Assembly: GCF_902459465.1 (NCBI RefSeq)
Contig: NC_047074.1
Coordinates: forward strand, 13,330,001 to 13,394,000
Direction: 5' to 3'
Origin: Asterias rubens
Lineage: Eukaryota
DNA length: 64,000 bases
Shown here: piece by piece, positions 10,509-60,290 of the stretch
Position numbering within the stretch: position 1 is the stretch's first letter
How the letters are laid out: each line of letters begins with the position of its first letter
Notes under the pieces: model-generated
The model's input: the letters and a program-made list of their open reading frames with translations, nothing else
Database searches by the model: none
Told to the model about the DNA's origin: nothing
Program-made: the position numbers and the translations under genes

Positions 10509-12723
10509 ATGATCAAACAGATTTTACTGGTGTCTGCACTGGCAGTGGTGGCGTACATCGTCCTACTACCCGTACCACAGGAAATAGAAAAACCATGGAC
10601 ACTGAAGATGATAACACTGGTTATGAAAGTGGTGAGTCTCAACTCAATGGAGGAACCCTCCTCCATGCTCAACTCTAACAACAACTTAACCCTTGCACAT
10701 GACGTCATGAGTTTGAAACAGCGCGCGACCTCTCTAGGCTCACTGGGGAAACAAGAGGCATGACCTGAACATCTGACGTCACATCGTGTATTTTGAAGAT
10801 TGCAAAACTTACACGATTTGAAGATGATAGTAGCTAGAAAGTCATCCCATGAGGCGCCAATTGTTTTAGCATGCCCAACGTAATTACCAGTGTATTTACC
10901 AACTTTTCTATTAAAAAACATAGATTTTTACTTTTTTTCCTCGTAAATTGACAACAAATGAAGCTGAAACTTCTACATGTGAAATAACATACGTTATTAC
11001 ATACATGTTCATTCACAGCGAGTAGGGATTCATGTCATGGCAAAATAACTTCAAAAATAACAAAATTTACGTATCAATACCTCTTAAAATAAAACAAAAC
11101 GTAATTTAATGGTCATAAAAATATTTCTTTGTAGATGTTTTTCATTGGGAACTCCTTCCCGTCGACAATGAAGAAACTCGACGAGCGTTTTCGACCTGGA
11201 ATGCGTGAGAAGGGTCCAAACGTTCCCTACACAGACACCGAGTTTGACGGGGTACTCGTTCGAGTATTTGATGATCAAAAGACTGGGGAGATTTCCACCA
11301 AGCGCCCGGCGATCGTTTTCTACCACGGTGGTGGCTGGCGACTCGGCCACATCGGTGAGTATTTCGCTGCGGCTGTAGATTTGAAATTAATAATCACTTT
11401 GATAATAATTATTCATGAATTTCTTTTGAAATTGTTCTAAAATGTTTTATTTGTTAACTTTAGACATGCAACACGGGTTGCTCTCGGAGTACGCGAGAAC
11501 TTTGGGTGTTGTGATCGTCTCTGTCGAGTAAGTACAGTTAAAACTGCACAAACTTTCACAAAAAACTTTGAAATAATCGTCCAAAATGTTGTATTTTCAA
11601 AATTGAATATAATATCACTTATTTTATGCATTAACTGAAAGAGAAGAGTTGAAACAGACAAGTTTGAAGTTGTCAACAATATAGTTTGAAAATCAATAAA
11701 ACCTGCATTTTGTGAGGTTTTTTTTTCAACAAAAACAAAGAACACCGTATTTGGCTAGAAGTAGGCCTACATCAGCACTGAGCATTGCAACTGTCGTGGT
11801 AATTTGACTGATAAACTATGACTGAACCCCTCTCCCCATTGTAGCTGCACCTTTACCATTGGGGCAATGATGTTCATCGTTGAAAATCTCCTGAGCAACA
11901 TAATGAAACATTTTTCTTTAAATCTTTTAGATACCGCTTGGCCCCAAAGTACATTTTCCCTGCTGCCATAGATGACTGTACAACAGCTACAGTTGCTTTC
12001 TTACGTCGCCTTGAAGAGTTCACTGTCGATCCAGCTAGAGTTGCTGTCATGGGTGACAGTGCTGGAGGAAACCTTGCTGCAGCTGTCGCTCAAAGGTTGA
12101 CCTTTGACCCTAAGTATGAGGGGTTACCCAAGCTGAAACTGCAGGTATTGATTTACCCTGCCTTGCAGGCGTTTGATTTGCAGCTTCCATCGAGCCAGCA
12201 GAATGGCGACTACTCCACTTTAGTTCTGGACCGTTTGACGACAGTAGAATTCATGGCGATCTACCTCAACAACAAACCGCATCTTAAAACTGCAATATCG
12301 CAAAACAAGCACACAACTCGACAAGCGAAGATGTCACCTAAGATACAAAAGTTGCTCTCACACGATTATATCCCTGATGAGTTCAAACAGAGTGGCTATA
12401 CAGCACCACCAGCAGTCGATGGCGACCATGAGTTGTACGAGGAGCTACATCCGGTTCTTATGAATCCAGACTTTGCTCCTCTTATGCGAGAAGATCTTCA
12501 AGGTCTACCGGAGGCGTACATCTTAACGGCTCAGTTTGATGTATTGCGAGATGATGGCATCATCTATGCTAAACGTCTTGAAGAGGCAGGCGTTAAAGTC
12601 ACATGGAAAAACTACAAGAATGGCTTCCATGGCATGTTTGGACAACAAGACACTCCACTCAACTCACCATCTGGGATTGTGGCCGACGAAGATTTCATGA
12701 AATTTATCAGGGAAAATCTGTAA
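10509..12723 (+). CDS. AADAC-like: Arylacetamide deacetylase-like lipase/esterase, copy 2, 399 aa
   Basis: join(10509..10631,11135..11354,11464..11527,11931..12723), 1200 nt, same intron phases as copy 1, intact HGGG, GDSAGG, Asp and His motifs. A probable non-coding first exon ends at the donor at 9688. Confidence 0.92.
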
Positions 12724-13450: not shown

Positions 13451-13745
13451 TTTTAACTGAAAAGTTTGTCGTAGTCGTAGGGTATGTAGGTGTCTTTAAT
13501 AATTACATCAAAAACCCTGACGTAAATAAACAGCTTTACAATTATTTACGCACTACATTTACGACCCTTGCCACACTGCCCACGGGTTACCTCAATCCTC
13601 CACTCCTATACCTTTTCACACCAAAATGTTTCAGATATTTTTCTCTGGATGTACCGTCCCCAATCGTCACAATCCTTCATCTTTTCACGATTTTAAACTC
13701 ACGAAGGACTTGCATAAAAATGTCTCTTTTTATCCTATCCCAAAC

Positions 13746-16700
13746 TTATTTTGACAATGGGAGATATCTTATTGCGGGAGTTCTGCCCTTGTCGCAAAGA
13801 AGATCCTCGGGTTTGGTCTTTTTCGGTGACGGCTACAAAAGAAGAAGAGAGAAGAAAAAACAGGTGTCAGATTTAACAGGTAAACCAAATGCCCTGTCTA
13901 TCACGGGAAAGCTTCATTAAAAAGAGGCTAGAATAAAACATCCTTTTCAATTGACAACTCACACCTGTTATGTCCATGTAATTCCTTTTTCAAACAGTGG
14001 ACTTAAATGGATAATGCACAAACCGGTAGGCTGCTGACAAACCAAGGCAGAGTAACTGATTATCCATTAAGTTTAATCAACCAAAAAGTAATTCATAGTA
14101 AACTTTCTTACCCTTTCTCTTCGTTCTGTAAGTTTGGCATACTCTGTCGCATAAAACTGAAAGACTTCCTCGCAGTCTTTGCGAATCTCGTGTCCTACAG
14201 GATTGTACTGGATGCAGTTGTTATGAACCAACATCATGTCGACATGGAAACCCGAAAAATCATCATACTGGCCACTCTGAAAGCAAAGTGTGTTTTTGTG
14301 ATTTAAAACAAATGATGAAAAGAAGAAAAAACCTGAAACATGGCAATAAACAAACTGGCACTACTTCAATTTATCCGAACAGATTAGAACAATAATTTTT
14401 ACCATTGTGGCCTCAATGGTCAGAAACACCCACAGAGAATAACCGTTTCTAAAATTAATATAAAAATAAAAAAATTTATATTCTAAATATTTCCTACAAT
14501 ATTCATAGTTTGTAACAAATAATTACCGTATATTTCCATTCAAGAAGTTCATTACCATCGTGCAAAATACACACTGCTCTAAACATTATGACAGAACCCA
14601 AGCCAAGGCAAAAGCCAACTCCCACGTTCAGAAAAGGTCCTTTGAGTCGGACAAGGGATAAGCAAGGTGTCTGCTCAATATTGAAGGGAGGTCTAATATT
14701 GTTAAAGTTTTACTAAGTGCACTTATCCACAAAAAGGTGCTCTGTTATAAAGTAAGAGAGAAAAAAAGAAAAAAAACGTGAAGAAAATTCAGTTTAAGAC
14801 TTTTTAATTACCTCCAGTTTCCTCTTGACTGTACCAAAATCCATGGGAGTCTTTATAACTCGATTATAACCAGGCGCTTCAGCAGCTGCAACTATAAGAC
14901 ATCAGAAGAAGAAGAATAACTAGCCATACGGTACAGGTTTTAACACCTGTTCAAACATTGAGTTAGTATTTCATGCAGTGTAAAGATAACTCAGTAATTT
15001 TGTGTGCGAAGAAGTCTTTCAGATGTAGTTATTTTCGTACTTTTCGTAGATATAACAGACTTTCTAGAGTCCGCAGGAATACATTTTCTAGTAAGAATAA
15101 TAAACATTATATCTCTTATGAGAGTAATTATGGGTAAAATTGTTCTATAGAAATTTGGCTAATCTGCAAACATAAATTTGATCTCAGGTTATGGGTTTTT
15201 TGGTGTCATTTTAATTATTTCTAGTTTGACACCTGACACAGTTTGACACACGTCATCATGACATCCTGATTTAGTTGCATCTTCATCATGTTAAGGCTCA
15301 GTTACATCTTAGCTTCAAGGCTCGTTTCCGTTTCATTTTCTGTTAAATTTATTTGACAAAATGTTCAATAAAATCGCAAAAAATCAGTAATGAAAATCAT
15401 TTTGATATCCAAAACTTGCAACGGAGTGAATTCTTTACCTGGTCTTGTAAACCATGAGGCAGCATTCAAGTCCCCCTTGGATCGATTGGCACCTCGGAAT
15501 CGCATCACACGCTGAAGCAAACTAACAAATCAATCAAGAACTAAAAATCAATTAAGAATTGGTAGTTGATCAAGAACTGATAATCAATCAAGAATTGGTA
15601 GATGACCAAGAACTATTAATCAATCAAGAATTGGAAGATGATCAAGAACTGATAATCAATCAAGAATTGGTAGATAATCAAGAACTGATAATCAATCAAG
15701 AACTAACAATAAATCATGAAGTGTTTTTCAATAATTAATAATCAATCAAAGGTAATCAATCACCGATGATCAATCAAGAACTAATAATCAACCAATAAAA
15801 AATTAATAATTAACCAAGACTAAATAAACATATTTAAGAATTCTATGGTATCATCATCTAACAGTAAACCAATAATCAGTTAAAATTGGAAAATTAAACA
15901 ATTTGAAGTATTAAGTAGTAAATCAAGTTGCAACCTAAAAAATAATCATACAAATATTTCAGTTAACAACAATCTTTCAAATTATTTGTGCGGACGAAGT
16001 TCAATCAAATAATTCCTCCGTTAATAATCAATCAAACAAATCAATCACACATTTCAGCAAACAATCGACAATTTCAGTGGATAGTACTACAATCAAACAT
16101 TTTAATGAGTAATAGTCAAACATTCTAGAGGGAAAAAATTGATCAAGCATTTCAATGAAAAAAAAACAATCAAACAGTGGACAAGGATCAATAAAATGTG
16201 TCAATAATCAAACATTTCAATGGACACTAATAAATCAAATACTTCATTGAAGAAATAATCAAAGAAAAGTGTCCGTGGACATCAATCAATCACACATTTT
16301 AGGTGTCAATAGTCAATCACACATTTCTTTTGTCATTAAGCAATTTTGCATTTTGATGGTCAATAATCAATTATCATGTCAATGGACAATAATAATCAAT
16401 AACAATCAATCATTTCAGAGGACAATCATCAACCAAACATTTTTCAAACATCTTCGAAATAATTTTTAGTCCAACGCCTTACTTGAAAGCAGCTCTTGCC
16501 CAACTGGACATGCTGGTGGGTCCGGGCTCATCGTCTATCGGAGCTGGTGCCTTCCGCTTACGACTACTAATCCTGACGTTAAGAGAGTCACTGGTACCCC
16601 GCTCCTCTGATCCTGAACCAGTAGTGACCGTGTAACCACCATCTAAAATAATAATAATAATAATAGTGGCTTCTTTATAATGCATAAAATAATCTGTGAA

Positions 16701-19700
16701 AAATTGGGCTTAATTGGTCATCGAAGTTCGGGAAAATAATGAAACAGAAAACACCCTTGTTACACAGAATTCTCTTCAATCCGCTGCATCTAAATCATTT
16801 TCCTTAGCCGCTCCAGGACTGTGGAACCATCTTCCCATCACAATACGCACCTCAATTTCACTGCCTATTTTCAAGAAAGCACTTAAAAAACATCTTTTTC
16901 CTTAGTGTCTGTTTATTGCTTTATTGTTCATTTGTTGTATTATCTGCATTGCTATTGTTCGTTTAAAGCGCTATTGTCTAAATGAAATGGCGCTTTATAA
17001 AAAAAACCATTGTATTGTATTGTATTGTACTGTGCTTTGAGATGCTTGAGAACAGTTTCAAATCAAATATTTAGTGAGAAATTACCTCTTTCTCAAAAAC
17101 TGCATTACTTAAGAGGGAGTTGTTTCTCACAATGTTGAATAATATCAACAGCTCTCTGTTGCTCGTTACCATACAAAAATATACTTGAGTTATTACCAAA
17201 TGTGTCAAACCGTCGATTTCACCAAACTCTTCCTAACTTAGGATTAATCTTAGGAGTTATGACGAGTGAAGTTTCGTATCCAAAGGCATAGGACGCATTG
17301 AACCCATCCTAAGTTAGGACGGGTGACTCATCCTAACTTGAGATAGGATTAATCCTAGCGTGTTGTGAAATCGGCTGCAGTACCTTTACGCAGAAAGTAT
17401 AGCTGAACAATTTTCTGCTTGGCAGAATTTAGCAAAATACCAGTTACAAATGTCTTATTTCTGATCCCCACCTTGTATTTTGACGGGGCTGGTATCTGGA
17501 CTTGTTAATAGTTGTTTCTCCTCATCGTCCTCTTCATCTTGGAGTCTCTGACTAGTAAAGTCTTCAAGCTTCATCTGGGAGATATCGACGGACCCGGATT
17601 CCATCACCACGCTAGCAGCCGCCTTCTGACCAGAGGATGAGATCGGTTCAAAGGTCTGTCAATCATAAAAAAGAGATGTGGCGCCATAAAAAAAAACGCT
17701 TCAAAGAAATTAAGCAAAGCTTTCAAGCAAAATGTTTATCCAACAGAGTTATGACGTCATCATATACGCCTCAAATAAATTTTCACAAAGCTGTTAAGAA
17801 AAAGAAAAACAATCCATCGGGCAACATTTTGTATGTCTACTTACTGCCAAATTCTGCACTTACGAACACCATTCTCCCCTTATTATACTGTGCTAGAGCC
17901 AAATTCCGCGCTAGCTGTGTAAGCAAAGAATGCCTAGTAACATCAGCTGAACGAAAATGGAGAGCTATAATGAAGGAAGTTTAAGTGTAGACTTGGGAGG
18001 AAAACCTTAGAGCATTAATCCAGGGAAAATCCCTGCAGTCAAGAATGAACTGAAAACCCAATCCACCTAGTGCGCCCGGCACCTCGACCACCCGAGTCAA
18101 TTGTACTCACTGTCTGACTTCTCCAAGACGGTCCTCCAAGTTGGGGTATGGCAACCTCAGCAACTGCTTTCTCCGACAAACGAATACCTTCTCGCTTCTC
18201 ACTTGACAATTCCAAAACTTTTCCAGCTGTAACCTGAGCGGAATCTGCAGCCTGCTGAGGGCCAGTGGCTTCAGATGGCTTCTGACTGTCACTTGGAGTC
18301 TTCCCCCTACCACTACGGCCGCCGACCGCTCCATCTTCTAGACCCTCACTCTCAAGGAACTGTTCGAACTGATCAACAAACGACGATACATCCTCCGACG
18401 ACAGATTGACCCTTTCAGTCACAACACCTTGTTCCTCCACTGTCATGTCCTTCCCTCCGTCCCCCGATCGTTCTTGTTGGACCTTTTTATGGATGGTGAC
18501 ATCAGAGAGACCTGCTGGACTGACGGTTCTGTCGCCAGGTTGTGGGCTGCGGGACTCGATTCGCTTCGCTAAAAGAGCTTTATTTTGTTCCTGAAGAGCC
18601 TTCTCAACTTCCATAGTGGCTGTTTGGAGAAAGGACGTAGATGGGGCAGACTTTCCTAAAAAAAATAAATTGAAAACAATATTTTATAAATGTGATCAGA
18701 TAGTAAAATAATATAATTCTTCCAAACAACAGGCTCCGTGCTGTCAGCATTATCCCGGAAGTCAGATATCTTCCAACCTTTCCATATTGAAGGCAAAGTG
18801 CACCTTTGGTTTTGGAACTGTTCAATTGTTTAAATCATATATAAATGCAGATGTATACTAAAGCTGCTTTTTAACTTTTGTTTGCCAATTAACTTTAAGA
18901 GTGATTACTCAACGTAAACTTTCCTTTAACATTTCTTTACTTCAGAAGGAACATGGGCAGGTTTCAAATGCCTTAGCTAAAAGGTTTTTTTTCCCCTCAC
19001 GTTTTTAGCTTTTGTTTCTAGATTAAGCGCATTGAGTAATGTGGGATTCACAATGTGCTTTATAAATGCCGTTTATTATTATTATTCTCATCATTGTTGG
19101 CTTCATCATGTCTGTCTTTGTTCTAATTGTCTGTCCGTTCGTTCTTGTCCCCGTTTATTGTCTGTCCCCAGGCATCCCTACATAAGCCTCCGCTTCAAGA
19201 TGATGCCTCCATACCCTATTTAAATATTTTTCTCTGCCTCATTAAATAGCTTCGCTTATTGGTTATTCCTTTAAAAAAAAAAAACTTTAAGTTCTATTTT
19301 CATGAAGTATGGAAATAAATATAAGTTTGAATGAATGAATTTATAATTAAGCATTAATCAAATCTGTTTCCATTCGATACCTGATTTAACTGAAGTTAAA
19401 GCTCTCTTGAGTTTTCTCTGCATGTTGGACAGTAACTGCGACGCCCCTTCCATCTGCATTCCTCCTCCGGCAGTGGAGAGTTCATATTGAGACACTCTGG
19501 GCATAACAGGTGAAGTCTGTGAGATTCTTGAAGGAGCGGGATTTGAGGATTGAGACGGAGAGGGAGACGGGGAGTAGGAGATTCTGGTGATGGATGGGGA
19601 TGAGGCGGAGGATGCCATTTGGGTAAGATCAATCGTCTGACGGCTTACATCTGTTGGTTAGAAAAACAAGTCAACAAATAGGAATATAGTCTTTAAGGGA

Positions 19701-22700
19701 AAATATACCTTTGGTTTTTGGAACCGTTTGATCGCTTTAGTTCTATTTAAAAATAGATAAATACAATACAACTGCCTGCTTCTTGAAGTGCCATCACCAA
19801 GGAGCTCTGGAATCACAGTTTGGTCTTGAAGTCTTGTGCTCTTTCACGGACCTGCAAACTTTTTTTATCAAAAGGTGGTCATGTTTTTGAGGTATCATCG
19901 AAAATCCAGAGCGGTTACGTCCACGCAAGAAGAATAATCCATTATTGGTATACACAATCTGAGAAAAATATCCGACAGTTACCCCTCTCAAATTGAGACA
20001 ACTGCTACATCAGTGGTTTTCTAACTGTTGTTCATTTGAATGGACACGCAAACAAATGTGTACCCATGATTCTGGCTGTGCGCATATCCAAACAGACACC
20101 TAGCCGTAGCCAATAGCTGCAGCCAAACAATAGCCTGGTCTTTGTCTTACCTGGGTGTGATCTAAACTCTAGTAACGCTTTAATGGCTGAGGAGGCAGAG
20201 TCAGGTGGCGCTCCATCGTAATCGATCCATTCACTATTGGGATGGAGCCCTCGCTTGACGCTTCCAGCAAACTCTAAAAACACAACAATAGACAAGACAG
20301 TTTATTGAAAATGGCAATTGCCAGAACCTTTATCCTCTGGCAGGTTAACAGGTTAACCTCCGCTCAAGTCTGAATATTAAGTTTACAAACTATTAAAATC
20401 AAGTAAAAAGTCACAAGCACTACTACTTATAAAAATACTAGATCAAGGCGCTGTGAACATTTGAGTTAGAATTGCTACACAGTTCTGTTTTGAGCAATTT
20501 CTTGAATGTAGCAGCGGAGGTAGAAGAGCAGATAATGTGGGGAAGATCGGTTCAAAGGCGGGGAACAATATAACCAAAAGAGCCTTGGCCAATAGATTTG
20601 GAGCAGGGAGTAGCATTCAAGGTGAGTGGGTTCATGAAATGATCGTAGTCTACTGTCCCGGTGATAGAATGATATGAGCCTAGAAAGACAAGATGGAGCC
20701 TGGGAGTTGATGGATTGCCAGATGATCAGGAAAGTAAATCAATAAATATAAAACTTCAAACGCCAATTTGTTTTACCTTCTTTGCTAGGTACCTCATCCA
20801 ACGAGCCTGGAGGTTTACTGCTCTGCAAGGCGTTTGGAGATATTGATGCCACTTGCCGTCTCTATACCAAACAAACGAGAAAGAGAATGACCGTTATCGA
20901 TGGACATCAAATGACCTTTGCATTCGATGAACCCAAATTCAGCTTCATTAGTCGACTAGTGTTTGAGAAAAAAAAAGTGAAAATAACAGAGGGGAGACTC
21001 AAATAAAGTTCCGGGAGTCACAACAAAAAATAATGACTTTTTTTTACTCATTTCGTAACAAACTACAGCAGCTCAGCAAGCATTATTTTAAAGGAAAGCT
21101 TTCTACCATCATTATCTATTAATCGTGTAAGTTTAATGTAAGTCTGTGGACGTTTGTGTTTTTGTGTTGTACAAAAAGTACCCAAACCCTTTAAAAACAC
21201 TAACTTTTCCATTTTTTTTTCAACAAGGATTCCTACCTGATTGGGCTGATTGCCGCTCGTCCTTATTGTTATCGGGCTTCTCATTCGCTTTGGTGATTTC
21301 ACCGTCGTTGTCATGGTAATATTACCATCGGTACTCTGTAATGTTGGAAAGCGAATACTCGAGGCCGACAAATTAGAGGCAGTTGTTGTTGAAGTTACGC
21401 CAGTTACCATGGCGATCCTGGGTCGCTGCAAGAGTGAGCTGGTCATGATATTGTGCACCTGCCAAAAAAAAATTTATGTTGAAAAAAATGTTTAACGATT
21501 ATAAACCAAACTCAAAGGAATGGTATACGTTTGATAATCACTCTTAAAATTTATGGCAAAAAAAACTTAATAGTACTGCAGCTTTCGATAGAACCATTTC
21601 ACTTTAAAGGGTCTATGAAACTTTTGTAGGAAATAAAACACAATGTCCACAGATTTACACTAAACTTACACAGTTTGAAGATAATGATAGTGGAAAGGTT
21701 CCCTGAAAATATTACAAGCTGAGGTGCTGTAGCTTTTGGGGAAATGAGTAAAACAATGTAATGAAAATTATTTTCGTCTCATGAGACGAAAAATTATTTT
21801 AATCATTTACAAACATATTTTCATGACATTGTTTTACTCATTTCTCAAAAAACTACAGCACCTCAGTAAGTAAGATTTGAAGGGAAGCTTTCCAATATCA
21901 TTATCTTCAAACCCTGTAAGTTTAATGTAAATCTATGGACATTTTGAAAAAGTACCCAAATCCTTTAAAGTAAAGTGCTATGGAAAGAATGAGCACTTTT
22001 TATTCCCCAAAGTTTGAATCTGAGAAGCACTACTGTCAGATCCGTGAACGCCGCTCAAGCTTGCTGGGCACTGTGTCCGCCCCACGGAGCTTGCCGCTTG
22101 CCCAACCATCCTCTGGGAGCCTACACAAGGCAAACACTACTGTCAGATCCGTGAACGCCGCTCAAGCTTGCTGGGCACTGTGTCCGCCCCACGGAGCTTG
22201 CCGCTTGCCCAACCATCCTCTGGGAGCCTACACAAGGCAAACACTACTGTCAGATCCGTGAACGCCGCTCAAGCTTGCTGGGCACTGTGTTCGCCCCACG
22301 GAGCTTGCCGCTTGCCCAACCATCCTCTGGGAGCCTACACAAGGCAAACACTACTGTCAGATCCGTGAACGCCGCTCAAGCTTGCTGGGCACTGTGTCCG
22401 CCCCACGGAGCTTGCCGCTTGCCCAACCATCCTCTGGGAGCCTACACAAGGCAAACACTACTGTCAGATCCGTGAACGCCGCTCAAGCTTGCTGGGCACT
22501 GTGTCCGCCCCACGGAGCTTGCCGCTTGCCCAACCATCCTCTGGGAGCCTACACAAGGCAAACACTACTGTCAGATCCGTGAACGCCGCTCAAGCTTGCT
22601 GGGCACTGTGTCCGCCCCACGGAGCTTGCCGCTTGCCCAACCATCCTCTGGGAGCCTACACAAGGCAAACACTACTGTCAGATCCGTGAACGCCGCTCAA

Positions 22701-25700
22701 GCTTGCTGGGCACTGTGTCCGCCCCACGGAGCTTGCCGCTTGCCCAACCATCCTCTGGGAGCCTACACAAGGCAAACACTACTGTCAGATCCGTGAACGC
22801 CGCTCAAGCTTGCTGGGCACTGTGTCCGCCCCACGGAGCTTGCCGCTTGCCCAACCATCCTCTGGGAGCCTACACAAGGCAAACACTACTGTCAGATCCG
22901 TGAACGCCGCTCAAGCTTGCTGGGCACTGTGTCCGCCCCACGGAGCTTGCCGCTTGCCCAACCATCCTCTGGGAGCCTACACAAGGCAAAGCCTCTCGTG
23001 TGAGAAGATGTCTCTCCTTCCTAGACTCCCTGAAACGTGACACCGGCTTGGCCGAGATGTCTCTCCCTGAAACGTGACACCGGCTTGGCCGAGATGTCTC
23101 TCCCTGAAACGTGACACCGGCTTGGCCGAGATGTCTCTCCCTGAAACGTGACACCGGCTTGGCCGAGATGTCTCTCCCTGAAACGTGACACCGGCTTGGC
23201 CGAGATGTCTCTCCCTGAAACGTGACACCGGCTTGGCCGAGATGTCTCTCCCTGAAACGTGACACCGGCTTGGCCGAGATGTCTTTCCCTGAAACGTGTC
23301 ACCGGCTTGGCCGAGATGTCTCTCCCTGAAACGTGACACCGGCTTGGCCGAGATGTCTTTCCCTGAAACGTGACACCGGCTTGGCCGAGATGTCTCTCCC
23401 TGAAACGTGACACCGGCTTGGCCGAGATGTCTCTCCCTGAAACGTGACACCGGCTTGGCCGAGATGTCTCTCCCTGAAACGTGACACCGGCTTGGCCGAG
23501 ATGTCTTTCCCTGAAACGTGACACCGGCTTGGCCGAGATGTCTCTCCCTGAAACGTGACACCGGCTTGGCCGAGATGTCTCTCCCTGAAACGTGACACCG
23601 GCTTGGCCGAGATGTCTCTCCCTGAAACGTGACACCGGCTTGGCCGAGATGTCTCTCCCTGAAACGTGACACCGGCTTGGCCGAGATGTCTCTCCCTGAA
23701 ACGTGACACCGGCTTGGCCGAGATGTCTCTCCCTGAAACGTGACACCGGCTTGGCCGAGATGTCTCTCCCTGAAACGTGACACCGGCTTGGCCGAGATGT
23801 CTCTCCCTGAAACGTGACACCGGCTTGGCCGAGATGTCTCTCCCTGAAACGTGACACCGGCTTGGCCGAGATGTCTCTCCCTGAAACGTGACACCGGCTT
23901 GGCCGAGATGTCTCTCCCTGAAACGTGACACCGGCTTGGCCGAGATGTCTCTCCCTGAAACGTGACACCGGCTTGGCCGAGATGTCTCTCCCTGAAACGT
24001 GACACCGGCTTGGCCGAGATGTCTCTCCCTGAAACGTGACACCGGCTTGGCCGAGATGTCTCTCCCTGAAACGTGACACCGGCTTGGCCGAGATGTCTCT
24101 CCCTGAAACGTGACACCGGCTTGGCCGAGATGTCTCTCCCTGAAACGTGACACCGGCTTGGCCGAGATGTCTCTCCCTGAAACGTGACACCGGCTTGGCC
24201 GAGATGTCTCTCCCTGAAACGTGACACCGGCTTGGCCGAGATGTCTCTCCCTGAAACGTGACACCGGCTTGGCCGAGATGTCTCTCCCTGAAACGTGACA
24301 CCGGCTTGGCCGAGATGTCTCTCCCTGAAACGTGACACCGGCTTGGCCGAGATGTCTCTCCCTGAAACGTGACACCGGCTTGGCCGAGATGTCTCTCCCT
24401 GAAACGTGACACCGGCTTGGCCGAGATGTCTCTCCCTGAAACGTGACACCAGCTTGGCCGAGATGTCTCTCCCTAAACGTGACACCGGCTTGGCCGAGAT
24501 GTCTCTCCCTGAAACGTGACACCGGCTTGGCCGAGATGTCTCTCCCTGAAACGTGACACCGGCTTGGCCGAGATGTCTCTCCCTGAAACGTGACACCGGC
24601 TTGGCCGAGATGTCTCTCCCTGAAACGTGACACCGGCTTGGCCGAGATGTCTCTCCCTGAAACGTGACACCGGCTTGGCCGAGATGTCTCTCCCTGAAAC
24701 GTGACACCGGCTTGGCCGAGATGTCTCTCCCTGAAACGTGACACCGGCTTGGCCGAGATGTCTCTCCCTGAAACGTGACACCGGCTTGGCCGAGATGTCT
24801 CTCCCTGAAACGTGACACCGGCTTGGCCGAGATGTCTCTCCCTGAAACGTGACACCGGCTTGGCCGAGATGTCTCTCCCTGAAACGTGACACCGGCTTGG
24901 CCGAGATGTCTCTCCCTGAAACGTGACACCGGCTTGGCCGAGATGTCTCTCCCTGAAACGTGACACCGGCTTGGCCGAGATGTCTCTCCCTGAAACGTGA
25001 CACCGGCTTGGCCGAGATGTCTCTCCCTGAAACGTGACACCGGCTTGGCCGAGATGTCTCTCCCTGAAACGTGACACCGGCTTGGCCGAGATGTCTCTCC
25101 CTGAAACGTGACACCAGCTTGGCCGAGATGTCTCTCCCTAAAACGTGACACCGGCTTGGCCGAGATGTCTCTCCCTGAAACGTGACACCGGCTTGGCCGA
25201 GATGTCTCTCCCTGAAACGTGACACCGGCTTGGCCGAGATGTCTCTCCCTGAAACGTGACACCGGCTTGGCCAGCCCTGAAGAACTACGCTCCTGCATGC
25301 TGGACCGGAACATCTGGAGAGAAACCACTGGGCAGGCTCGAGCTTCCACATGGCGCTCGACTTGATGATGACTGTCAGATACAGTTCTCAGATTGTGTTT
25401 TCCAATTGAAGATTATTCTTCAATCAACAACATGACTGCTCCTGATTTTCAGTTATATTCCAAAAAGGCCTTTTGCGATGAAATTTTCACAGGTTAGTTT
25501 TATTGTATATCTACATTTGTACAGGACTAAAAAATCTGACAGTTCCACAAATCAAAGGTAAATGTTCCCCTTAAACAGCGATGACCCTGAATAGTTGTCA
25601 GTACTTACTGGTGAGTTTTTAGCTGACTCTGTGAGTTGAGCTGGAGATGGTTGAGGGTGTGCTTTGTGCATCATCACAACGCTTGTCTTACCAGTCATCT

Positions 25701-28700
25701 TCTGTGTACCACTCGTCAACGATTGGCCAACATCTGAACAAAACAAACAAAAACTAACATTATTATATTTTTCCAGACTTTTTATTTTAACGAATTAGAC
25801 CATAAATGGATTTTTTCAGTGTTGTACTCGTTCTCACAGGGCTCGAATTTTACACTGCATTTCTGAGGCCAGTGATTTTAGCTACGGGCCAATAAAATTA
25901 TGACTGGACCAAGACCGACTGTCTCAGGTTTTTCAATTTAATACTAATACCTTTCTGCGTAATGATTCTATATTAACAAAAAAATTATGTTACAATTTTG
26001 GTTGAGTCTGGTATAATATATTTCAATTTAAAAACAGTATCAAAGTACACTTGCATACAATAAGAATAGAAAACTTCTCAGAACCAACACTACTCAAAAC
26101 AGATGTACACATGGCACTACTGAAAACCTCACATAACTATACTCCGACCATGCAAAGGTTTCTAATCCTACTTACTTGTAATTGTGGCAGCTTTGAAGCT
26201 CTGGACAGTCTTTGGTTTGTTGGTTCCAGCAATGCTGACGATGCCTCCAGGCTTAGGCCTGGGCTATAACAAGCCTAACCTAACTATACTCACACCATGC
26301 AAAGTTTCAAATCCTACTTACTTGTAATTGTGGCAGCTTTGAAGCTCTGGACAGTCTTTGGTTTGTTGGTTCCAGCAATGCTGATGATACCTCCAGGCTT
26401 AGGCCTGGGCTATCACAAGCCTAACCTAACTATACTCACACCATGCAAAGGTTTCTAATCCTACTTACTTGTAATTGTGGCAGCTTTGAAGCTCTGGACA
26501 GTCTTTGGTTTGTTGGTTCCAGCAATGCTGACGATGCCTCCAGGCTTAGGCCTGGGCTATCACAAGCCTAACCTAACTATACTCACACCATGCAAAGGTT
26601 TCTAATCCTACTTACTTGTAATTGTGGCAGCTTTGAAGCTCTGGACAGTCTTTGGTTTGTTGGTTCCAGCAATGCTGACGATGCCTCCAGGCTTAGGCCT
26701 GGGCTATCACAAGCCTAACCTAACTATACTCACACCATGCAAAGGTTTCTAATCCTACTTACTTGTAATTGTGGCAGCTTTGAAGCTCTGGACAGTCTTT
26801 GGTTTGTTGGTTCCAGCAATGCTGACGATGCCTCCAGGCTTAGGCCTGGGCTATCACAAGCCTAACCTAACTATACTCACACCATGCAAAGGTTTCTAAT
26901 CCTACTTACTTGTAATTGTGGCAGCTTTGAAGCTCTGGACAGTCTTTGGTTTGTTGGTTCCAGCAATGCTGACGATGCCTCCAGGCTTAGGCCTGGGCTA
27001 TCACAAGCCTAACCTAACTATACTCACACCATGCAAAGGTTTCTAATCCTACTTACTTGTAGTTGTGGCAGCTTTGAAGCTCTGGACAGTCTTTGGTTTG
27101 TTGGTTCCAGCAATGCTGATGATACCTCCAGGCTTAGGTCTAGGCTATCACAAGCCTAACCTAACTATACTCCGACCATGCAAAGGTTTCTAATCCTACT
27201 TACTTGTAGTTGTGGCAGCTTTGAAGCTCTGGACAGTCTTTGGTTTGTTGGTTCCAGCAATGCTGATGATACCTCCAGGCTTAGGCCTAGATACGGGAGA
27301 CATCGATGACATGTGATGAGAGATAACTCCGGCTGAACTTGTTCCAATCACTACTTTATTACCTACATTGTTAAAATGTTAACAATACAAGAAAATCAAA
27401 ATTCACAGCACTGCTTATTGGTAAGATTATTTTTTTTAATTACTATGGCAAAAAATGTTGCTTAAGCTTAAGCATTTTTTAGAGGCGACCAGCTTGTGCG
27501 TATCCACCATGGATTTGCATTGTTGCGTCATTCATTTTCATAAAGTAAGCAGCGGAAGGTTAGGATGCCTTTTCGTGTACTTACGGTAAGCAGCAGAATG
27601 GCAATCTCACAGTAAGCACAAAATCCACTGTTAAGCAACTCTGCATTTCTGTTCGCAGAGCTGTCCAAAACTGGTCAACAGGAGCCTAATCCAAAACCAT
27701 TAGTCTCTCCTCAATTGGCTTTAAGATATTCTTGACTCAAGAAAAGTATATCTGAAAATCAGTGCTTGCCCAGAAAAAGCGGAAAACTGGTGATCAAAAG
27801 CGCATAATTCTTCAATAAGTAGAGCCATGAATTTGGGCCCAGGTGGTGGGATGTCCATTTTGTTTGGTCTCACCTGCTATTGTAGTCACAGGCATGGAGG
27901 TCATCATAGCAGGGGATGGCATCGACGTCTTGGAGGTCGTTTCTATGGTAACAGTAGGTTGACCCATTGACCTCTGGTGTTTACTAGTAGCAGTGACACT
28001 GACAGACTGACTGAAACTTTTCACACCTTGTAACAAGAAAAGATGTAAACTATGCTTATATACATATTCATGACCAGAACAGTAAATACATATTCAGTCT
28101 ATGCTGAAGTCTATGCTGGTCTCTAATTGGCCAAACATTGGCGTTATTATTTTATGCATATTTCATGACCCGAAAAGTGCCACTGCCTTTAAATACAAAT
28201 GTGTTTGAAAAAAAGTTTACCTGTCTCTGATTTGATTTGTTGCTTCCTATTGCTTGCGTTCATACCGGGCCCCATTTGGGTCGTCACATCGGGGTGCTGT
28301 GCCATCTGCTTCATCAGTTTCTGTTTGCCGACAGCTCTCACCCGAGGCTTCCCGGCCATGTTTGTAGATACGTAGGATGCCATCTGTGAGCTTATCAATG
28401 ATGCTGGGTGTAAAGAATTTGAAATACAAAGTAATTAGAGTACAATTAGGTGAGGTTTGCGGTAGCACCATTTGTAAATCTCTTTTGATTAGTGTTAGTT
28501 CTAAAAAGAACTGGTGGTTGATAAATCAACGTTTCTATCAGTAGGTCATTTTGAGTTGAAAACTGACAAGAAGGCAGGGGTCGATTTCACAAAGAGTTAG
28601 GACTCGTCTTATCTCGAGTTAGGACGAGTAACTCGTCTTAACTTAGGATTAATCTTAAGGTCCGCATGCTACAGTGCAGGGTTGGGACTCGACCTAAGTC

Positions 28701-31700
28701 CTAAGATTAGTCTTAAGTTAGGAAGAGTTTTGTGAAATCGGTGGCAGTAAGCCTGGGCGATATCACGATATTATCGAATATCGCGATATTAATTTGGAAA
28801 CGATTTCGATATCGGATGGATTTGGTTTTAATCGAAATATCGATATATCGCGATATATCACGATAAACGCGATAATCGCGATATATCGCAATATCGATTA
28901 AATATCGCGATGTATTTGCTAGCTGAGACATCTTGCTCCCCATAAGTTTGGAGTAAAACCAGAAGAATAGGTCATTAGAACACCTCTCTTAAGCTATGAC
29001 TGTCTCTTCTACAACTTTCACTTGGAGTTTGAAGACTGATGATGTCAAATTTCATTAATCGCGATTATATCGAATATCACGATATATTGTCGGCGATATA
29101 TCGTGAATAAAATAAATCGATATCGCCCAAGCTTAGACGGCAGGGCTTGTAGCACAAAACATTAACTTGACCAGAAATGTTAGTACAAGCCCAGATATTA
29201 GAAACAAAAAAAGGTTTGAAAGTTTTTCCAACGAGTTGAGCAATCGTCTGAAACAATCCATACAGGTAGTGTGTGGTGGCAAGTGCACTGAACTAGGTAT
29301 GTACTGTGTCGCATTCACCACGCAGATTCCAAACTGCTGAATGTATCCGTCAATCAAACTACACTGGATAATTTGAATAGTCAGACAGTGGTAGGGTTGA
29401 CTGTGTACTGTGTAGATGCACTCACCAAAAGCAAAGTTTATCTATCATTCAAAATCACATCATTCATCGGTCACACAGTAGGAGGGTTATATTTTGTATA
29501 TGCAAGTTTGCCCCAAACAAGGCTAAAAGCCACTCTAGGTAAGGAGCTGCAAGAAGAAAATGATTAAACGTGAAAATAACTCAGCAGAGCTGGAGGTAGG
29601 AATTGATATTCCTCTTCAAACAGTCTTGAATGTAGGATGGGGGAGGGGAACATCCACCAGGCAGGGAGTTCCAAAGAGGTGCAGTACTGGTACTTACTGG
29701 TAGTCCTTGCCGTGATGACAGTGCTTTTGATGGACGGTACCGCTCCAATGTTCCCTGATGCTTTCCTCCCCGTACTGATGACTGGGATTGTCCCTGGCAT
29801 GACCTCGGGGCTACTAGGAAATTGACGACTGCTGGAAATCTGGCACGTTTTCCTCTCCATCTGCTGTTGGGATAACTGGGCGTGCTGTCTGACGTTTGAC
29901 CTGCTGGCGGCGGACTGTTGTCGCCCTCGTTGCGTTACGATCGGTTGTTGTGCGCCTCCGGGTTTCATGTCGGGCTGTCGAGACAGGGACTGACCGGACA
30001 TACTGGTCAGTATGACAGACTGCTTGGTGCCTGATTTGATGATGGGCGACTTGGATGAGGGTACACTGTGTGACCGTTGAAGGATGGACGGGGTGAAGGA
30101 TGTCGAGCTGCTGGACACCAAGATTACCTGAAATCGAATTACCTTTTCGTTATAGACCGAGCACGTATTGATGTTCAACCATCCTGAACAAAGTTGGTCC
30201 TACCCATGTTAAGTTTTAAGTGTCCACTTTTGATTCTTCAATACTTTAGTTTAACCATTTAGAGACAGTTCATCAAACATACGTCCAGACATTGCTCCGT
30301 TGTACTCCGTTAAAATTAATATGAAACAGAAATACGTGTATGGCTTTTTTCTTTAGACTTGTAGTTTTTATGTTAACATGGGGAAATTTAAAATTGTCAA
30401 CTCGTTCCAGTACCTTTTCATTGACCGTCCGCTTTGTGCGGAAGTAGATCAAATTTTGCAGACGTTTGCGACTTCTGCAAGCATTTTGGTACAAGCCATT
30501 TTTATTTTCAAAAGTTTTGCACCAATAAGAAATGATTTCATAGAAAAAGTATAGTCTTTATTTGATTTTACTTTTATGCTTTCTATTTTTAGATTCTCAA
30601 AACTTATTTACCGTTAAAAATGGAGGAATCACATTTCAGCCTTACTACTTACTTTCTGAGCTGCATTACTACTCGCTGATTGCCCACTAGTGGCCTTGGT
30701 GTATGTATATTTAACCGGTGACTGTGCACTACTCATTCCCGTCTTAGCGACACTACTCATCGATGATGACAGCGAAGGTTTGCCAGCAGGCGCCATACTC
30801 AACCCAATGAGCGACTTGTTATTCGCTAAATTCATACCGACGTGTTGTTTGCTTGGATTGAATCCAAGGTGTTGTTGCTTGGTGGCCGGTAAGCTCAGTG
30901 ATCGACTGGTCGTGATGATGTGTCCACTCGATGATTTGGGACTCGGTGGGGCGAGTAGACTCACTGGGGCCGAGGTTTGTTGGCTGTGGGGCGAAGGCAG
31001 TGGCTCCTTTGATGGTGGTCCGCTAGACGAGTCATAGCGAGATCTCTTCACTGGAGGAGTATCGATTTCGATATCTGGGCCACCTACACGAATTCAGAAG
31101 CCAAAAAAATAAAAGCAAGTTTGCCCCAAACAAGGCTAAATGCCACTCTTAGTATGGAGCTACAAGAAAAGAAAAAATATTAAATGTGAAAAGAACTCAG
31201 GGGAGTTGAAGGTAGGAATTGATGTTCCTCTTTAAACAGTCTAGATTGTAGGATGGAGGGAAACATGCACCAGACAAGGATTCCAAAGAGATGCAGTACA
31301 AGGACAAAAATGGCACACCGGGTTGTTTCTTGTGGATGCAGCTTTTTACCCTTATGATGAGCATTGCAATGTAGAGGAAGGGCTCACCCTAGCCCTGTGT
31401 CTATGAAATACTTCTTTGGGCTCGCAAAAACACACTTCTCAACTTGCCTCTTGGGATACTTACACTAGCCTGGTGTCCAGGAAAAACTGTGACGGGCTCG
31501 AAAAGCCACTTCGTAACTTGCCTCATGGTTTGGATAATTTTCACCCAAAAACATTTGAGCCAGAGGCCGTGTCCGAAACGACGACTTTAGCTACAGCTCG
31601 ATCAGAGTTCTGGCCATAGCTGTAGCTGAATGTGCAGTTTTAGGTATGGCCTGAGAAATGATTTATGCATGAATTGTTTCTCAGAGCTAAAATTTATGAC

Positions 31701-33161
31701 TATTTTATGGCCCTTACTTTAGGAAGGCTGAAATAATGGAGGAGGTGGTAAGGGTTTAAAATCCTGCGTACCTTTTACTGGAATGGAGATGCCGCAGGGT
31801 AAAACTACAACATTGGGCGAAGGGCTCGGAGGCTGATGCTGAGGTTTCATTCCAACACTGCTATTCTCATTTCCAATCGGTACTTTAACCAAAAATACCA
31901 CAAATAGTTATTTTAACAGCACTGCACTCCTGGAATTACACAGAGTCCTATGCTATTAATCCCCTATTGTTTTACTCATTTCCCAAAAAACTACAGCACC
32001 TCAGCACGTAGTATTTTCAGGGAAGCTTTCTACTATCATTATCTTCAAACTGTGTAAGTTTAGTGTTAATCTGTGGACATTGTGTTTTTTGTCCTACAAA
32101 AGTTACATAGACCCTTTAAGGCAAAGCTCTAACGACGAAAAACAAATCATCACAGTAGTAGTTTTTCACAATTAAACAAAAGTTAGGAAAAATTGTCTTA
32201 CTTTCTTTTCTAGCCGTTTCCGAGGGCAAAGGAAGTGTGAGATTATGGCTGAATGCTGCATTGGCTGCCTGGTTAGCCGTTAATGAGAACACAGTCTGTG
32301 GTACAAGCCTCGGCATCAGGGGTATCAGACGACGTCCTTCAATGGCCCACTCTGCAGAGTTATTTGGTCCGCTCAATCTGGGTCGGATCAAGCAGTCATG
32401 TTTCAATCAAAACAAAATTCTTAGGTTTAGGCGATTAACATATTGGTCTGATAAACCCAAAAAAATGCACTACAACATGGTCCAATTTCTTGGCTTTGCT
32501 TACAGCCAAATTCTGTGCTGATGATCACCATTCTCCCCTTACTGGGCAAGCGCCAAATGTAAGCGAAGAATGCCTAATAACGTAGAGCACGCATGGGTAC
32601 AACAAAAACTTCCCTGCTCACTGGTAAAATAAGCACGAAGGTAAGCGTTGCTTCTTTGTTTAATAAGGTAAGCAGAGCAAAGAAATTTGGCCCAGAAGAC
32701 CGTACACCAAAAGTGTAAGAATTTAATGGCCTGGGTTTACATCCAGTTTGTCATACCTCTCCGCAACTGTGGATAGTTTTTCATCGTTGACGGCTCTTCG
32801 GACCTCAGCACGATGACGTTCTGTAGAAATACTACAGGAGATAAAGTATGAACGTCAGTCACGGCAGATGGTTATATTTTGTTGCGTCAGTACAAACACA
32901 AAAAGCAAAAGGTTTAATCCCGAGTCGACCAAAACTTGGGAGGTAGCATATTAAAAAAGAATGGACCATTACCCTTAATATTTACTTCCCAATTTATTAC
33001 CTGAGTGTCGTTGATAGTTCGTTGAGAATATTTTTCTTGTCTTTGGTCAAATCACCCTGGGCACGGAACGCGCTGACAATCCCAGCGTATGCCTCAAGTT
33101 CAGTTCGTCTTAATAATCTCTTGCACTCGTCTTTACTCATGTCCAGTAGCTTCGGCCACAT
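13746..33161 (-). CDS. EMSY: BRCA2-interacting transcriptional repressor EMSY homolog with N-terminal ENT domain and C-terminal bromodomain, 1323 aa
   Basis: Coding exons on the minus strand: 33001-33161, 32757-32831, 32202-32377, 31772-31882, 30653-31083, 29698-30127, 28221-28403, 27874-28026, 27204-27362, 25609-25733, 21237-21458, 20777-20861, 20151-20273, 19381-19650, 18111-18619, 17472-17655, 16483-16642, 15439-15521, 14812-14891, 14112-14276, 13746-13832. All are GT-AG and in phase, 3972 nt. The N-terminus MWPKLLDMSKDECKRLLRRTELEAYAGIVSAFRAQGDLTK...ISTERHRAEVRRAVNDE...EGRRLIPLMPRLVPQT is the EMSY ENT domain. Boundaries in the low-complexity middle exons are less certain. Confidence 0.88.
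15525..16440. repeat. Degenerate AATCAATCAAGAA-type low-complexity tandem repeat in an EMSY intron
   Basis: Many imperfect AATCAATCAA(GAA) units, most regular at 15525-15720. Confidence 0.6.
16757..17030 (+). mobile_element. L2/CR1-clade LINE 3' end nested in a family-A MITE fragment
   Basis: Encodes SFSLAAPGLWNHLP..IR.S.SL..FKKALKKHLF*, typical of the L2-type ORF2 C-terminus, followed by an (ATTGT)n tail; it interrupts the family-A sequence. Confidence 0.75.
17212..17377. mobile_element. Harbinger-like MITE (CGATTTCAC..GTGAAATCG); related copy in opposite orientation at 28578-28744
   Basis: Short TIRs with CCTAACTTAGG-rich interior; the 28578 copy is flanked by CAG on both sides. Confidence 0.6.
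20460..20720 (-). mobile_element. Decayed L2/CR1-clade LINE 3' fragment
   Basis: Minus strand reads GQGSFGYIVPRL*TDLPHIICSSTSAATFKKLLKTEL, a degraded RAFS..APRLWN.LP motif. Confidence 0.55.
21608..21964. mobile_element. TTAA-flanked MITE, family C (Kolobok-like); partial inverted copy at ~31970-32114
   Basis: TTAA flanks and internal inverted GAGGTGCTGTAG / CTACAGCACCTC. The two ends do not match each other well, so it may be chimeric. Confidence 0.55.
22028..22990. repeat. 107-bp tandem repeat, 9 copies
   Basis: Period 107 (ORF starts at 22168, 22275, 22382...); copies nearly identical. Confidence 0.97.
22042..25370 (+). mobile_element. 5'-truncated RTE-clade LINE expanded internally by two minisatellites
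   Basis: With the arrays collapsed it reads IRER[1-nt deletion]LKLAGHCVRPTELAACPTILWEPTQGKASRVRRCLSFLDSLKRDTGLASPEELRSCMLDRNIWRETTGQARASTWRST*, then a (TGA)n tail. TSD ACTGTCAGAT at 22032-22041 and 25371-25380. Confidence 0.85.
23028..25272. repeat. 37-bp tandem repeat, about 60 copies
   Basis: Unit CCCTGAAACGTGACACCGGCTTGGCCGAGATGTCTCT; few variants. Confidence 0.97.
26140..27290 (-). repeat. 147-bp tandem repeat (8 copies) made of the 3' half of EMSY exon 27204-27362 plus its splice donor
   Basis: The donor-equivalent boundary recurs at 27204, 27057, 26910, 26763, 26616, 26469, 26322 and 26176. Confidence 0.93.
28748..29135. mobile_element. hAT-like MITE with CGATAT-rich subterminal repeats
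   Basis: TIRs TAAGCCTGGGCGATAT / ATATCGCCCAAGCTTA; degenerate 8-bp TSD GGTGGCAG / GACGGCAG. Confidence 0.7.
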
Positions 33162-42899: not shown

Positions 42900-44010
42900 T
42901 TAATTGAGAACTGATGATTCAAAGGTTGGCACCATATATTTAATGTTAATGAATGCATCGTCGCCACCGTGTTTCTCAAACGCTTCTAACGTTTCCTGAA
43001 TAAGATCTCCGACATTCTCCCTCTTCTGCTGTCCGTAGTCGATGCCGTCTCCGATGTTCAGGTTCTGTGCCTTGAAGGTGTTGAGGATAGGAAGGATTTG
43101 TCGGTAGTACGGAACGAGCGCCTCTCCGACCATGTCGGCCGATACAACCAAGTGTTGAAGGACCTTCAGCGTCGTACAGAGAACTTTGGGATTCCGCAGA
43201 TTTAGGGCTTCCTTGATGGGGATGATTAACTGAGGGATAACTGGAAGGATTTTGTTTGAGCCGCCGTGCTCCAGCATGTCGTGAACACCTTGCCGAGCGA
43301 AGAACTCGTAGGGGTGAGCTGTTTCCTTGAGTCCATCGAAGAACATGGGAAGGTAGTGATGGTAGTCGAGCTTGTCTATCTCCACCTGGATGAAACAAAA
43401 GGGGAAAAGAAGAAATGGATTGAATATGTTGAAGTTATCTAAAAAATGTAAAGAAAAACAATAGACAATGTTAGAACAATTGTTTAGACTGAAACTGTGG
43501 CTAGTAGTAGATTGGTATAGTATAGTCTGCATTCTGGACACATTGAAATCGGTAATTGTCATGTTTTTTGTGCAACACTGATCATCATGATGATTCAGGA
43601 ATTTGCAACTTTCAAATTTGTGTTGATTTTGGTGTAAAGTTTCAAAATCAAAACAAAGTTAAGAAAAGTATAAAAAAGAAGCAGTTTGAATTGAAGACAT
43701 CCCAATTAATTTCTAAACCTTGAATATTTAGTCGATAAAATGCAAACTTTAGTCTCTGCGTAAAGTGATGAATAAAGGGGATCGTTACCTTCCATGCGAT
43801 CTTGTTGCCTTTTGTATCATGCTCGAGAGCGATTGGGAAGTCTCCTCTTTCGTAGAACTTCCTGAATTCTGTCGGCTTTCCCGGAGATTGAACGAAAGCA
43901 CCAGCTTTCTTCGGGCTGATAACTTGTGCATTTTTCATTTGTGATTTAACTGTGAAAGCATCTGCAATTATGGGTTTCGTGTGGCTCCTGGTTCCCTTTG
44001 CTACACTCAT
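42900..44010 (-). CDS. PACRG: Parkin coregulated gene protein homolog, 235 aa
   Basis: Exons 43789-44010 and 42900-43385. Sequence [26 protein letters not shown]|[53 protein letters not shown]...[38 protein letters not shown]. The start codon is provisional; a short upstream exon may end near 44173. Confidence 0.95.
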
Positions 44011-59968: not shown

Positions 59969-60109
59969 GTTGACTGCATTCAAACGCTGGTCCTTTTTGC
60001 TTCCTTGTCCGAGTGAAATCCACATCAAGAATTCGTTGGCTGAAATAGAATAAAAATGTGAAATTATGTTTTGTTTTGATAGTTGTGACAAAGAGTAGCA
60101 TGATGTACA

Positions 60110-60290
60110 CAATTATTTGGGGTTGAACAACGTAAAAATAACGAGAGTGGGACTCGAACCAACGACCTCCGGGTTTCATGCCGTCGCTCTACCAACTGAG
60201 CTATCTAGCTAGCACACTATGTTGGTGGTCTCCCTATGTTGTCAATATTTTTGTTCGGGTTGCCAGTCAGTGACAGTCACTCGAATAGGA
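60110..60290 (-). mobile_element. tRNA-derived dispersed repeat; second copy at ~52330-52500
   Basis: TAGCTCAGTTGGTAGAG and GGTTCGA(G/A)TCCC boxes with shared non-tRNA flanks; the acceptor stem does not pair. Confidence 0.6.

Follow-up and report, generated by a model that had tools for sequence, protein, structure and literature searches.

EMSY and its described relatives

Work on EMSY has, to our knowledge, dealt almost exclusively with mammals, where it is known as a BRCA2-linked oncogene and as a SIN3B/KDM5A complex subunit; how it acts is poorly understood. The ENT domain (PF03735) is a dimerising domain. Mammalian EMSY co-purifies with SIN3B, HDAC1/2, KDM5A, PF1 and MRG15 (PMC6295471), and EMSY is among the listed partners of ZMYND11/BS69 (PMC9755447). 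Here, we discuss the EMSY gene in a 64,000-nucleotide (nt) stretch of the genome of the sea star Asterias rubens (NC_047074.1, positions 13,330,001 to 13,394,000; this whole stretch is referred to as the window, and coordinates below count from its first letter). In this animal, one mRNA would encode an N-terminal ENT domain, a long low-complexity middle region and a C-terminal canonical bromodomain (structured part at residues ~1191-1306). Our overall reading, to which we give a probability of roughly 0.87, is that EMSY unites ENT and a bromodomain in one chain, that this arrangement is ancestral to eumetazoans, and that the bromodomain would anchor the protein to acetylated histone tails.

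The sea star EMSY gene

The gene model was obtained by a splice-aware exact match of the A. rubens EMSY protein (P0275) against the window. The coding span, 13746..33161 on the minus strand, comprises 21 coding exons with a total of 4008 nt including the stop codon and encodes 1335 amino acids (aa); every intron is of the GT-AG type (Table 1). Because the spliced product equals the RefSeq protein exactly (XP_033637631.1 / XP_033637632.1, 1335 aa, identical residue for residue), this is an already annotated gene, with the name "BRCA2-interacting transcriptional repressor EMSY-like" [Asterias rubens]. There is no difference between XP_033637631.1 and the window gene, and all that the window contributes is the raw genomic view. 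Moreover, the model is collinear with the Acanthaster and A. amurensis orthologues. When the ENT exon was searched against 1.84 billion representative proteins, EMSY proteins were returned, and 16 of the representatives also matched the spliced EMSY C-terminus; their names include the EMSY-like proteins of Acanthaster planci, Asterias amurensis and Asterias rubens. Scanned in six frames with the PF03735 profile, the whole 417.6-Mb assembly shows a single locus, at 33122-33000 and 32833-32753 (minus strand) of the window. EMSY is thus single-copy in the sea star genome, and the bromodomain exons are the last 5 of the 21 coding exons of this orthologue.

An earlier note on this DNA, made from the sequence alone, had assigned a C-terminal bromodomain to EMSY and proposed that both Pfam profiles be run on the model. 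Both match: in the whole protein, ENT (PF03735) covers residues 15-82 with 79 bits (gathering cut-off 28.5) and the bromodomain (PF00439) residues 1218-1288 with 65 bits and an E-value of 6e-18 (cut-off 21.7), and Pfam finds no domain besides these two. The peptide quoted in the note is spliced in phase from the last exons exactly as described (minus strand, read from 16900 to 13500), and the two ends that it gave are exact, 33161 being the start of the ATG in the ENT exon and 13746 the last base of the TAA stop. The note spoke of a split over four exons. This number is correct for the quoted peptide, whereas the whole module covers five. Exon 17 ends on two bases of a codon, and exons 18, 19 and 20 keep the frame, with AG acceptors and GT donors throughout; exon 21 contributes a tail of 28 residues and, at 13748-13746, the TAA stop.

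The bromodomain and its predicted pocket

Exons 19 and 20 each score above the PF00439 gathering threshold on their own (E-values 4.8e-5 and 9.8e-6, respectively), and they do so on adjoining stretches of the profile, 24-47 and 48-83. The profile match continues over the splice junction and is therefore not due to chance. Among solved single domains, the closest phmmer matches are the second bromodomain (BD2) of BRD3 (56.9 bits) and then BAZ2B (52.5 bits). The segment NCIQYNPVGHEI of sea star EMSY aligns to NCYKYNPPDHEV of BRD4 BD2, and both the anchoring Asn and the BD2-type His are among the aligned positions. N93 (Asn1277) and Y50 (Tyr1234) of EMSY align to the NCYKYN and DY positions of BRD4 BD2. 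Both are invariant among 42 orthologues; the note, too, had stated that the acetyl-lysine-binding Asn is retained. The same alignment shows invariance at W8, G24, W37, F38, V42, P57, M58, D59, L67, E68, N88, C89, D102 and E113. The EMSY bromodomains of the 42 orthologues are 42-86% identical to each other and always C-terminal.

An AlphaFold model, with the 42 orthologues as input, has a mean predicted local distance difference test (pLDDT) score of 87.6 and helices at 7-20, 60-68, 75-92 and 98-122, and the predicted fold is a left-handed four-helix bundle with ZA and BC loops. In Foldseek, the model superposes on BAZ2A, PCAF and BRD9 at a root-mean-square deviation (rmsd) of 1.3-1.5 Å (BAZ2A, 1.3-1.4 Å), with target-normalised template modelling (TM) scores of up to 0.95 for BAZ2A and 0.93 for PCAF, and matches BRD2/BRD3 BD2 at 30-32% identity. 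Judged by the Pfam match and this model, the C-terminal module of EMSY is a genuine bromodomain with a predicted acetyl-lysine pocket that is intact. The two Asterias species differ at 28 residues of EMSY, 0 of which are inside ENT or the bromodomain, and BLASTP against amphioxus, oyster, coral and Hydra picks up nothing beyond the ENT and bromodomain blocks (46-65% identity). Across most animal phyla, a bromodomain with an intact predicted pocket is the second most conserved part of EMSY.

Because the Asn and Tyr are invariant, it is very probable that the EMSY bromodomain binds acetyl-lysine. Its likeness is closest to the second bromodomains of BET proteins, and it would tether EMSY to acetylated histone tails; the complex assembled by ENT and the middle region would be anchored there alongside it. 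In this scenario, invertebrate EMSY would read acetylated chromatin directly.

Distribution and ancestry of the ENT-bromodomain architecture

The distribution was surveyed with the Acanthaster protein as query and the pre-computed Pfam content of protein clusters. The clusters in which PF03735 and PF00439 occur together number more than 80 and range from Cnidaria to Cephalochordata. Among deuterostomes, these clusters include sea stars, urchins, sea cucumbers, crinoids, three hemichordates and three Branchiostoma species; among protostomes, many molluscs, annelids, brachiopods (Lingula) and nemerteans, as well as arthropods (a centipede, a millipede, ticks and a scorpion); and among cnidarians, Hydra, Actinia, Hydractinia, Sanderia, Acropora and Clytia. 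Annotated invertebrate EMSY orthologues (Acanthaster, Patiria, Lytechinus, Saccoglossus, Branchiostoma, Crassostrea, Lingula and Hydra, among others) all carry both domains, as the window gene does. The vertebrate EMSY hits are all ENT only in the pre-computed Pfam content, and a hidden Markov model (HMM) of the EMSY bromodomain, followed down to an E-value of 10, has no match in caecilian and gar EMSY. The same HMM and threshold gave no match in the EMSY models of a damselfly, a katydid, the medfly, one spider and one fluke.

Exons derived from the genomic loci of Hydractinia (P0162) and amphioxus (P0160) allow the gene structures to be compared. The four introns of the bromodomain module interrupt the same codons in the same phases (2, 1, 0 and 0) in the sea star, amphioxus and Hydractinia, and the two exons in the middle measure 83 and 80 nt in all three, the hydrozoan included. 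Because intron positions and phases are identical, the fusion is placed before the cnidarian-bilaterian split; these gene structures point to an ENT-bromodomain fusion already present in the common ancestor of cnidarians and bilaterians and to ENT-only forms as losses.

Vertebrate EMSY (C11orf30) is the orthologue of the sea star protein, and both are single-copy. ENT and the first ~140-360 residues are 41-72% identical to the sea star: residues 1-360 show 43% identity to caecilian EMSY (E-value 1e-74), and the product of exons 1-3 is 71.5% identical to bird EMSY over residues 1-137. The two also have a short C-terminal motif in common. Sea star residues 1099-1137, in exon 16, align to residues 1216-1248 of the 1264 in gar EMSY, and amphioxus residues 1128-1182 to residues 1261-1316 of the 1324 in caecilian EMSY. 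The motif match is weak for the sea star (E-value 0.018) and stronger for amphioxus (E-value 1.8e-4). Vertebrate EMSY stops 8-20 residues after the equivalent of the exon 16 motif and, unlike the sea star protein, is without a bromodomain. On these alignments, it ends just before the bromodomain module.

The earlier note had stated that human EMSY has no annotated bromodomain, had suggested that the architecture may be ancestral and lost in vertebrates, and had proposed a survey of metazoan EMSY. The survey and the intron comparison agree with the first two points. Could the bromodomain instead have been gained independently in several invertebrate lineages, with the ENT-only form as the ancestral one? 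ENT-only EMSY models in vertebrates, insects, a spider and a fluke would fit such a history, as would the pairing of ENT with Agenet in plants. On the other side stand the mutual orthology of the bromodomains, with the identity range and constant C-terminal position given above, the exons of 83 and 80 nt and the four introns, alike in position and phase, that cnidarian, echinoderm and chordate have in common, and the retention in the vertebrate protein of the motif that precedes the module. The conserved intron positions led us to reject independent gains for Cnidaria and Bilateria, and we regard this history as extremely improbable.

Fission rather than loss in vertebrates was also considered. 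A search for a stand-alone EMSY-type bromodomain protein (249-791 aa) in vertebrates gave no support for one, in an insensitive search that covered only 270 word-sharing candidates. The best vertebrate matches were BET/BRDT-like (92-107 bits), and an unnamed bromodomain-only protein of 580 aa from JGI scored 159 bits. Loss of an ancestral module remains our reading of the vertebrate protein. The conservation of the bromodomain across most animal phyla suggests that reading histone acetylation was part of the original job of EMSY and that vertebrates have lost this function or delegate it.

Transcript evidence and points against the reading

Logan contigs from four public runs, representing two species, were placed on the window from 13700 to 19660. 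Two spliced contigs join several of the exons. In the window's species, record 6 of run X1 (3298 nt) joins exons 14-19 and extends ~2025 nt further upstream. In the related species, record 18 of run X5 (3854 nt) joins exons 14-17, a 163-nt stretch, which is the length of exons 18 and 19 together, and exons 20 and 21, with a further 2158 nt upstream on the exon 14 side. The splice joints 14276/14812 and 13832/14112 are present in all four runs. According to the gene model, the coding sequence upstream of exon 14 amounts to 2434 nt, and by their length, the two contigs would reach exon 3 or 4, just past ENT. In other taxa, proteins of 1200-1350 aa with both domains were called on contigs of 4-5 kb, which are therefore intronless transcripts.

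Several observations count against a joined, acetyl-reading and ancestral EMSY. The placed contigs stop short of the ENT exons, at about codon 93-140 by length. The check on one transcript from 33161 to 13746, as proposed in the note, has thus succeeded for exons 14-21, and the contigs do not extend it to ENT. In addition, the depth of unspliced contigs over the last three introns (18-20) equals or exceeds that of the spliced joints in two runs, so that a second RNA species or inefficient splicing at the 3′ end must be present there. The shelf motif reads WF in all orthologues, without the Pro of WPF. Finally, the absences in spiders and insects rest on gene models, and some ENT-only arthropod models may be annotation splits. 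An example of a divided annotation is seen in the scorpion Centruroides sculpturatus, where an 889-aa EMSY-like ENT protein and two proteins of 452 and 604 aa named "bromodomain-containing factor 1-like" lie on one contig.

The unspliced signal concerns runs X1 and X2, both from the window's species, in which such contigs cover 14864 to ~15296-15300, 14249-14749/14841 and 13804-14005. In X1, their depths are 177, 92 and 74, vs 62-100 for the spliced joints and 23 for the upstream spliced contig. In both runs, the unspliced contigs end at ~15296-15300, and intron 17 is nearly uncovered. The signal between 13804 and 15300, which comes from strandless contigs, may reflect an internal start in intron 18, intron retention at the 3′ end or RNA from the plus strand; a reading by eye, which is weak evidence, showed no plus-strand poly(A) signal upstream of 15296-15300. 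An expressed repeat was rejected as the source of the deep intronic contigs, as both stretches are single copy in the genome. Whatever its origin, the unspliced signal leaves the existence of joined transcripts unaffected.

This signal raises the question of whether the bromodomain exons constitute a separate downstream gene, such that the ENT-bromodomain protein would be a chimeric prediction. The beginning of the X1 and X2 contigs near 15296-15300, at a depth greater than that of the upstream spliced contig, is what a separate gene might give, and the C. sculpturatus RefSeq annotation keeps the two domains apart. The sister scorpion Centruroides vittatus, however, has a joined ENT-bromodomain model of 1259 aa, and RNA that starts at ~15300 would miss helix Z and could not give rise to a complete bromodomain. 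Furthermore, contigs from the four runs and two species splice exon 16 to exon 17 and onward through exon 21, the frame is continuous with no in-frame stop and no obligatory new ATG, and the intronless 4-5 kb contigs of other taxa encode both domains. The spliced contigs together with the exact RefSeq match led us to reject a separate gene, which we consider very unlikely.

The shelf motif bears on a different possibility, namely that the bromodomain fold was kept for protein-protein contacts or for recognition of another acylation and does not read acetyl-lysine. Several bromodomains are atypical, and the WF shelf of every orthologue could be taken to place EMSY among them. Two observations stand against this: the anchoring Asn, the pocket Tyr, PMD and NC..YNP..H have stayed the same, or almost the same, through more than 600 My of divergence, and the AlphaFold model superposes at 1.3-2.8 Å on domains of BAZ2A, BRD2 and PCAF with bound ligand. 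We consider a non-reading module unlikely and retain acetyl-lysine binding as the predicted function. Because the WPF shelf reads WF, the ligand preference of the EMSY bromodomain may differ from that of BET domains.

Gene structure and other features of the window

The coding exons of EMSY and the codon of the predicted anchoring residue are collected in Table 1.

Table 1 Coding exons of the EMSY gene in the window, listed from the start codon to the stop codon.
Feature	Position	Strand	Content and evidence
Exon 1	33001..33161	-	ATG and first half of ENT; PF03735 positions 1-42, 43.8 bits
Exon 2	32757..32831	-	second half of ENT; PF03735 positions 42-68
Exon 3	32202..32377	-	conserved EMSY block after ENT (SGPN..EWAIEGRRLIPLMPRLVPQT)
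Exon 4	31772..31882	-	gene model
Exon 5	30653..31083	-	gene model
Exon 6	29698..30127	-	gene model
Exon 7	28221..28403	-	gene model
Exon 8	27874..28026	-	gene model
Exon 9	27204..27362	-	gene model; 3′ end recurs 6 more times in the next intron
Exon 10	25609..25733	-	gene model
Exon 11	21237..21458	-	gene model
Exon 12	20777..20861	-	gene model
Exon 13	20151..20273	-	gene model
Exon 14	19381..19650	-	gene model; within spliced contigs X1 record 6 and X5 record 18
Exon 15	18111..18655	-	gene model and contigs
Exon 16	17472..17655	-	last block alignable to the vertebrate EMSY C-terminus; gene model and contigs
Exon 17	16483..16642	-	linker, basic stretch SSRKRKAP, start of helix Z (SSWARAAF; model helix 7-20)
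Exon 18 (83 nt)	15439..15521	-	remainder of helix Z and start of ZA loop (WFTRP)
Exon 19 (80 nt)	14812..14891	-	ZA loop, pocket Tyr (APGY), PMDF; PF00439 positions 24-47
Exon 20	14112..14276	-	helices B and C, NCIQYN motif; PF00439 positions 48-83
Asn1277 codon AAT	14202..14204	-	predicted acetyl-lysine-anchoring Asn of NCIQYN
Exon 21	13746..13832	-	basic C-terminal tail and TAA stop; gene model and contigs

Two introns of EMSY hold repeats. At 26177-26994, in the intron that follows exon 9, the last ~28 codons of this exon recur six more times at a spacing of 147 nt. The copies have 93-96% protein identity to residues 599-626, and the RefSeq-identical model uses the first copy only. Intron 10 contains, at 22870-25412, a GC-rich (52-59%) minisatellite. 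All three of its minus-strand frames are open, for up to 811 codons, with the same ~37-residue peptide repeating; the period of the minisatellite is therefore not a multiple of three, and spurious long open frames result.

Outside EMSY, two open frames of 261 aa on the plus strand (6054-6839 and 11938-12723) match the same range of the Abhydrolase_3 profile (PF07859) with ~137-139 bits. They probably represent the terminal exons of arylacetamide-deacetylase-like genes that arose by tandem duplication and converge on the 3′ end of EMSY. On the minus strand, an uninterrupted frame of 469 aa at 58703-60112 gives a full-length serpin match (PF00079, 423 bits) and is apparently an intronless serpin gene. 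A single-exon frame of 220 aa at 42900-43562, also on the minus strand, matches most of the profile of the Parkin co-regulated protein (ParcG, PF10274; 237 bits) and may be an intronless copy or retrocopy.

Novelty and significance

The earlier note could not tell whether the architecture had been catalogued. It has been: the combination of ENT and bromodomain is present in RefSeq models, in pre-computed Pfam content and in UniProt, where several orthologues have the name "Bromo domain-containing protein". In full-text literature searches that paired EMSY with bromodomain or ENT domain, no description of an EMSY bromodomain came up; the architecture is catalogued and apparently undiscussed. 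As the result of a genome scan, it is not a discovery, since RefSeq, Pfam and UniProt already contain both the gene model and the domain pair. It does provide biologists who study EMSY with a testable hypothesis, for which echinoderm, amphioxus and cnidarian embryos are natural models.

Comparison with BET proteins and with ENT proteins of plants and kinetoplastids

The described domains most similar to that of EMSY are the second bromodomains of BET proteins (BRD2/3/4/BRDT). Among single domains in the PDB, these give the best match by sequence, they have the NC..YNPP.HE motif, with its BD2-type His, in common with EMSY, and the fold is alike at 30-32% identity. After the EMSY orthologues, vertebrate BRDT-like proteins are the next-best matches. 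BET proteins carry two bromodomains and an ET domain, whereas EMSY has one bromodomain, no PF17035 and a shelf that reads WF and not WPF. Membership of the BET family was rejected on the basis of the single PF00439 match and the missing ET domain (PF17035) in whole-protein Pfam.

The coupling of an ENT protein to a bromodomain reader is known from other eukaryotes. In Arabidopsis, EML1/2 (ENT and Agenet) are bound by the BET protein GTE4 (bioRxiv 10.1101/2024.07.25.605061), and a kinetoplastid ENT protein lies close to BDF5/BDF3 or purifies together with them (PMC9279504, PMC8559703, bioRxiv 10.64898/2026.03.22.713544). These analogies raise the possibility that the fusion in EMSY is a 'Rosetta stone' of an ancient, eukaryote-wide ENT/BET-like partnership and that vertebrates and insects lost the domain as a separate bromodomain protein serves the EMSY-SIN3B-KDM5A complex. 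We found this idea stated nowhere in our literature search and regard it as a tentative and rather doubtful extension. If it holds, the substitute reader in vertebrates and insects could be a BET protein or ZMYND11/BS69. The difference between the systems lies in the linkage. Plant EML1/2 and GTE4 couple an ENT protein to a bromodomain reader in trans, as do the separate polypeptides of the kinetoplastid ENT protein and BDF3/BDF5, whereas in invertebrate EMSY both domains are in cis, within one chain.

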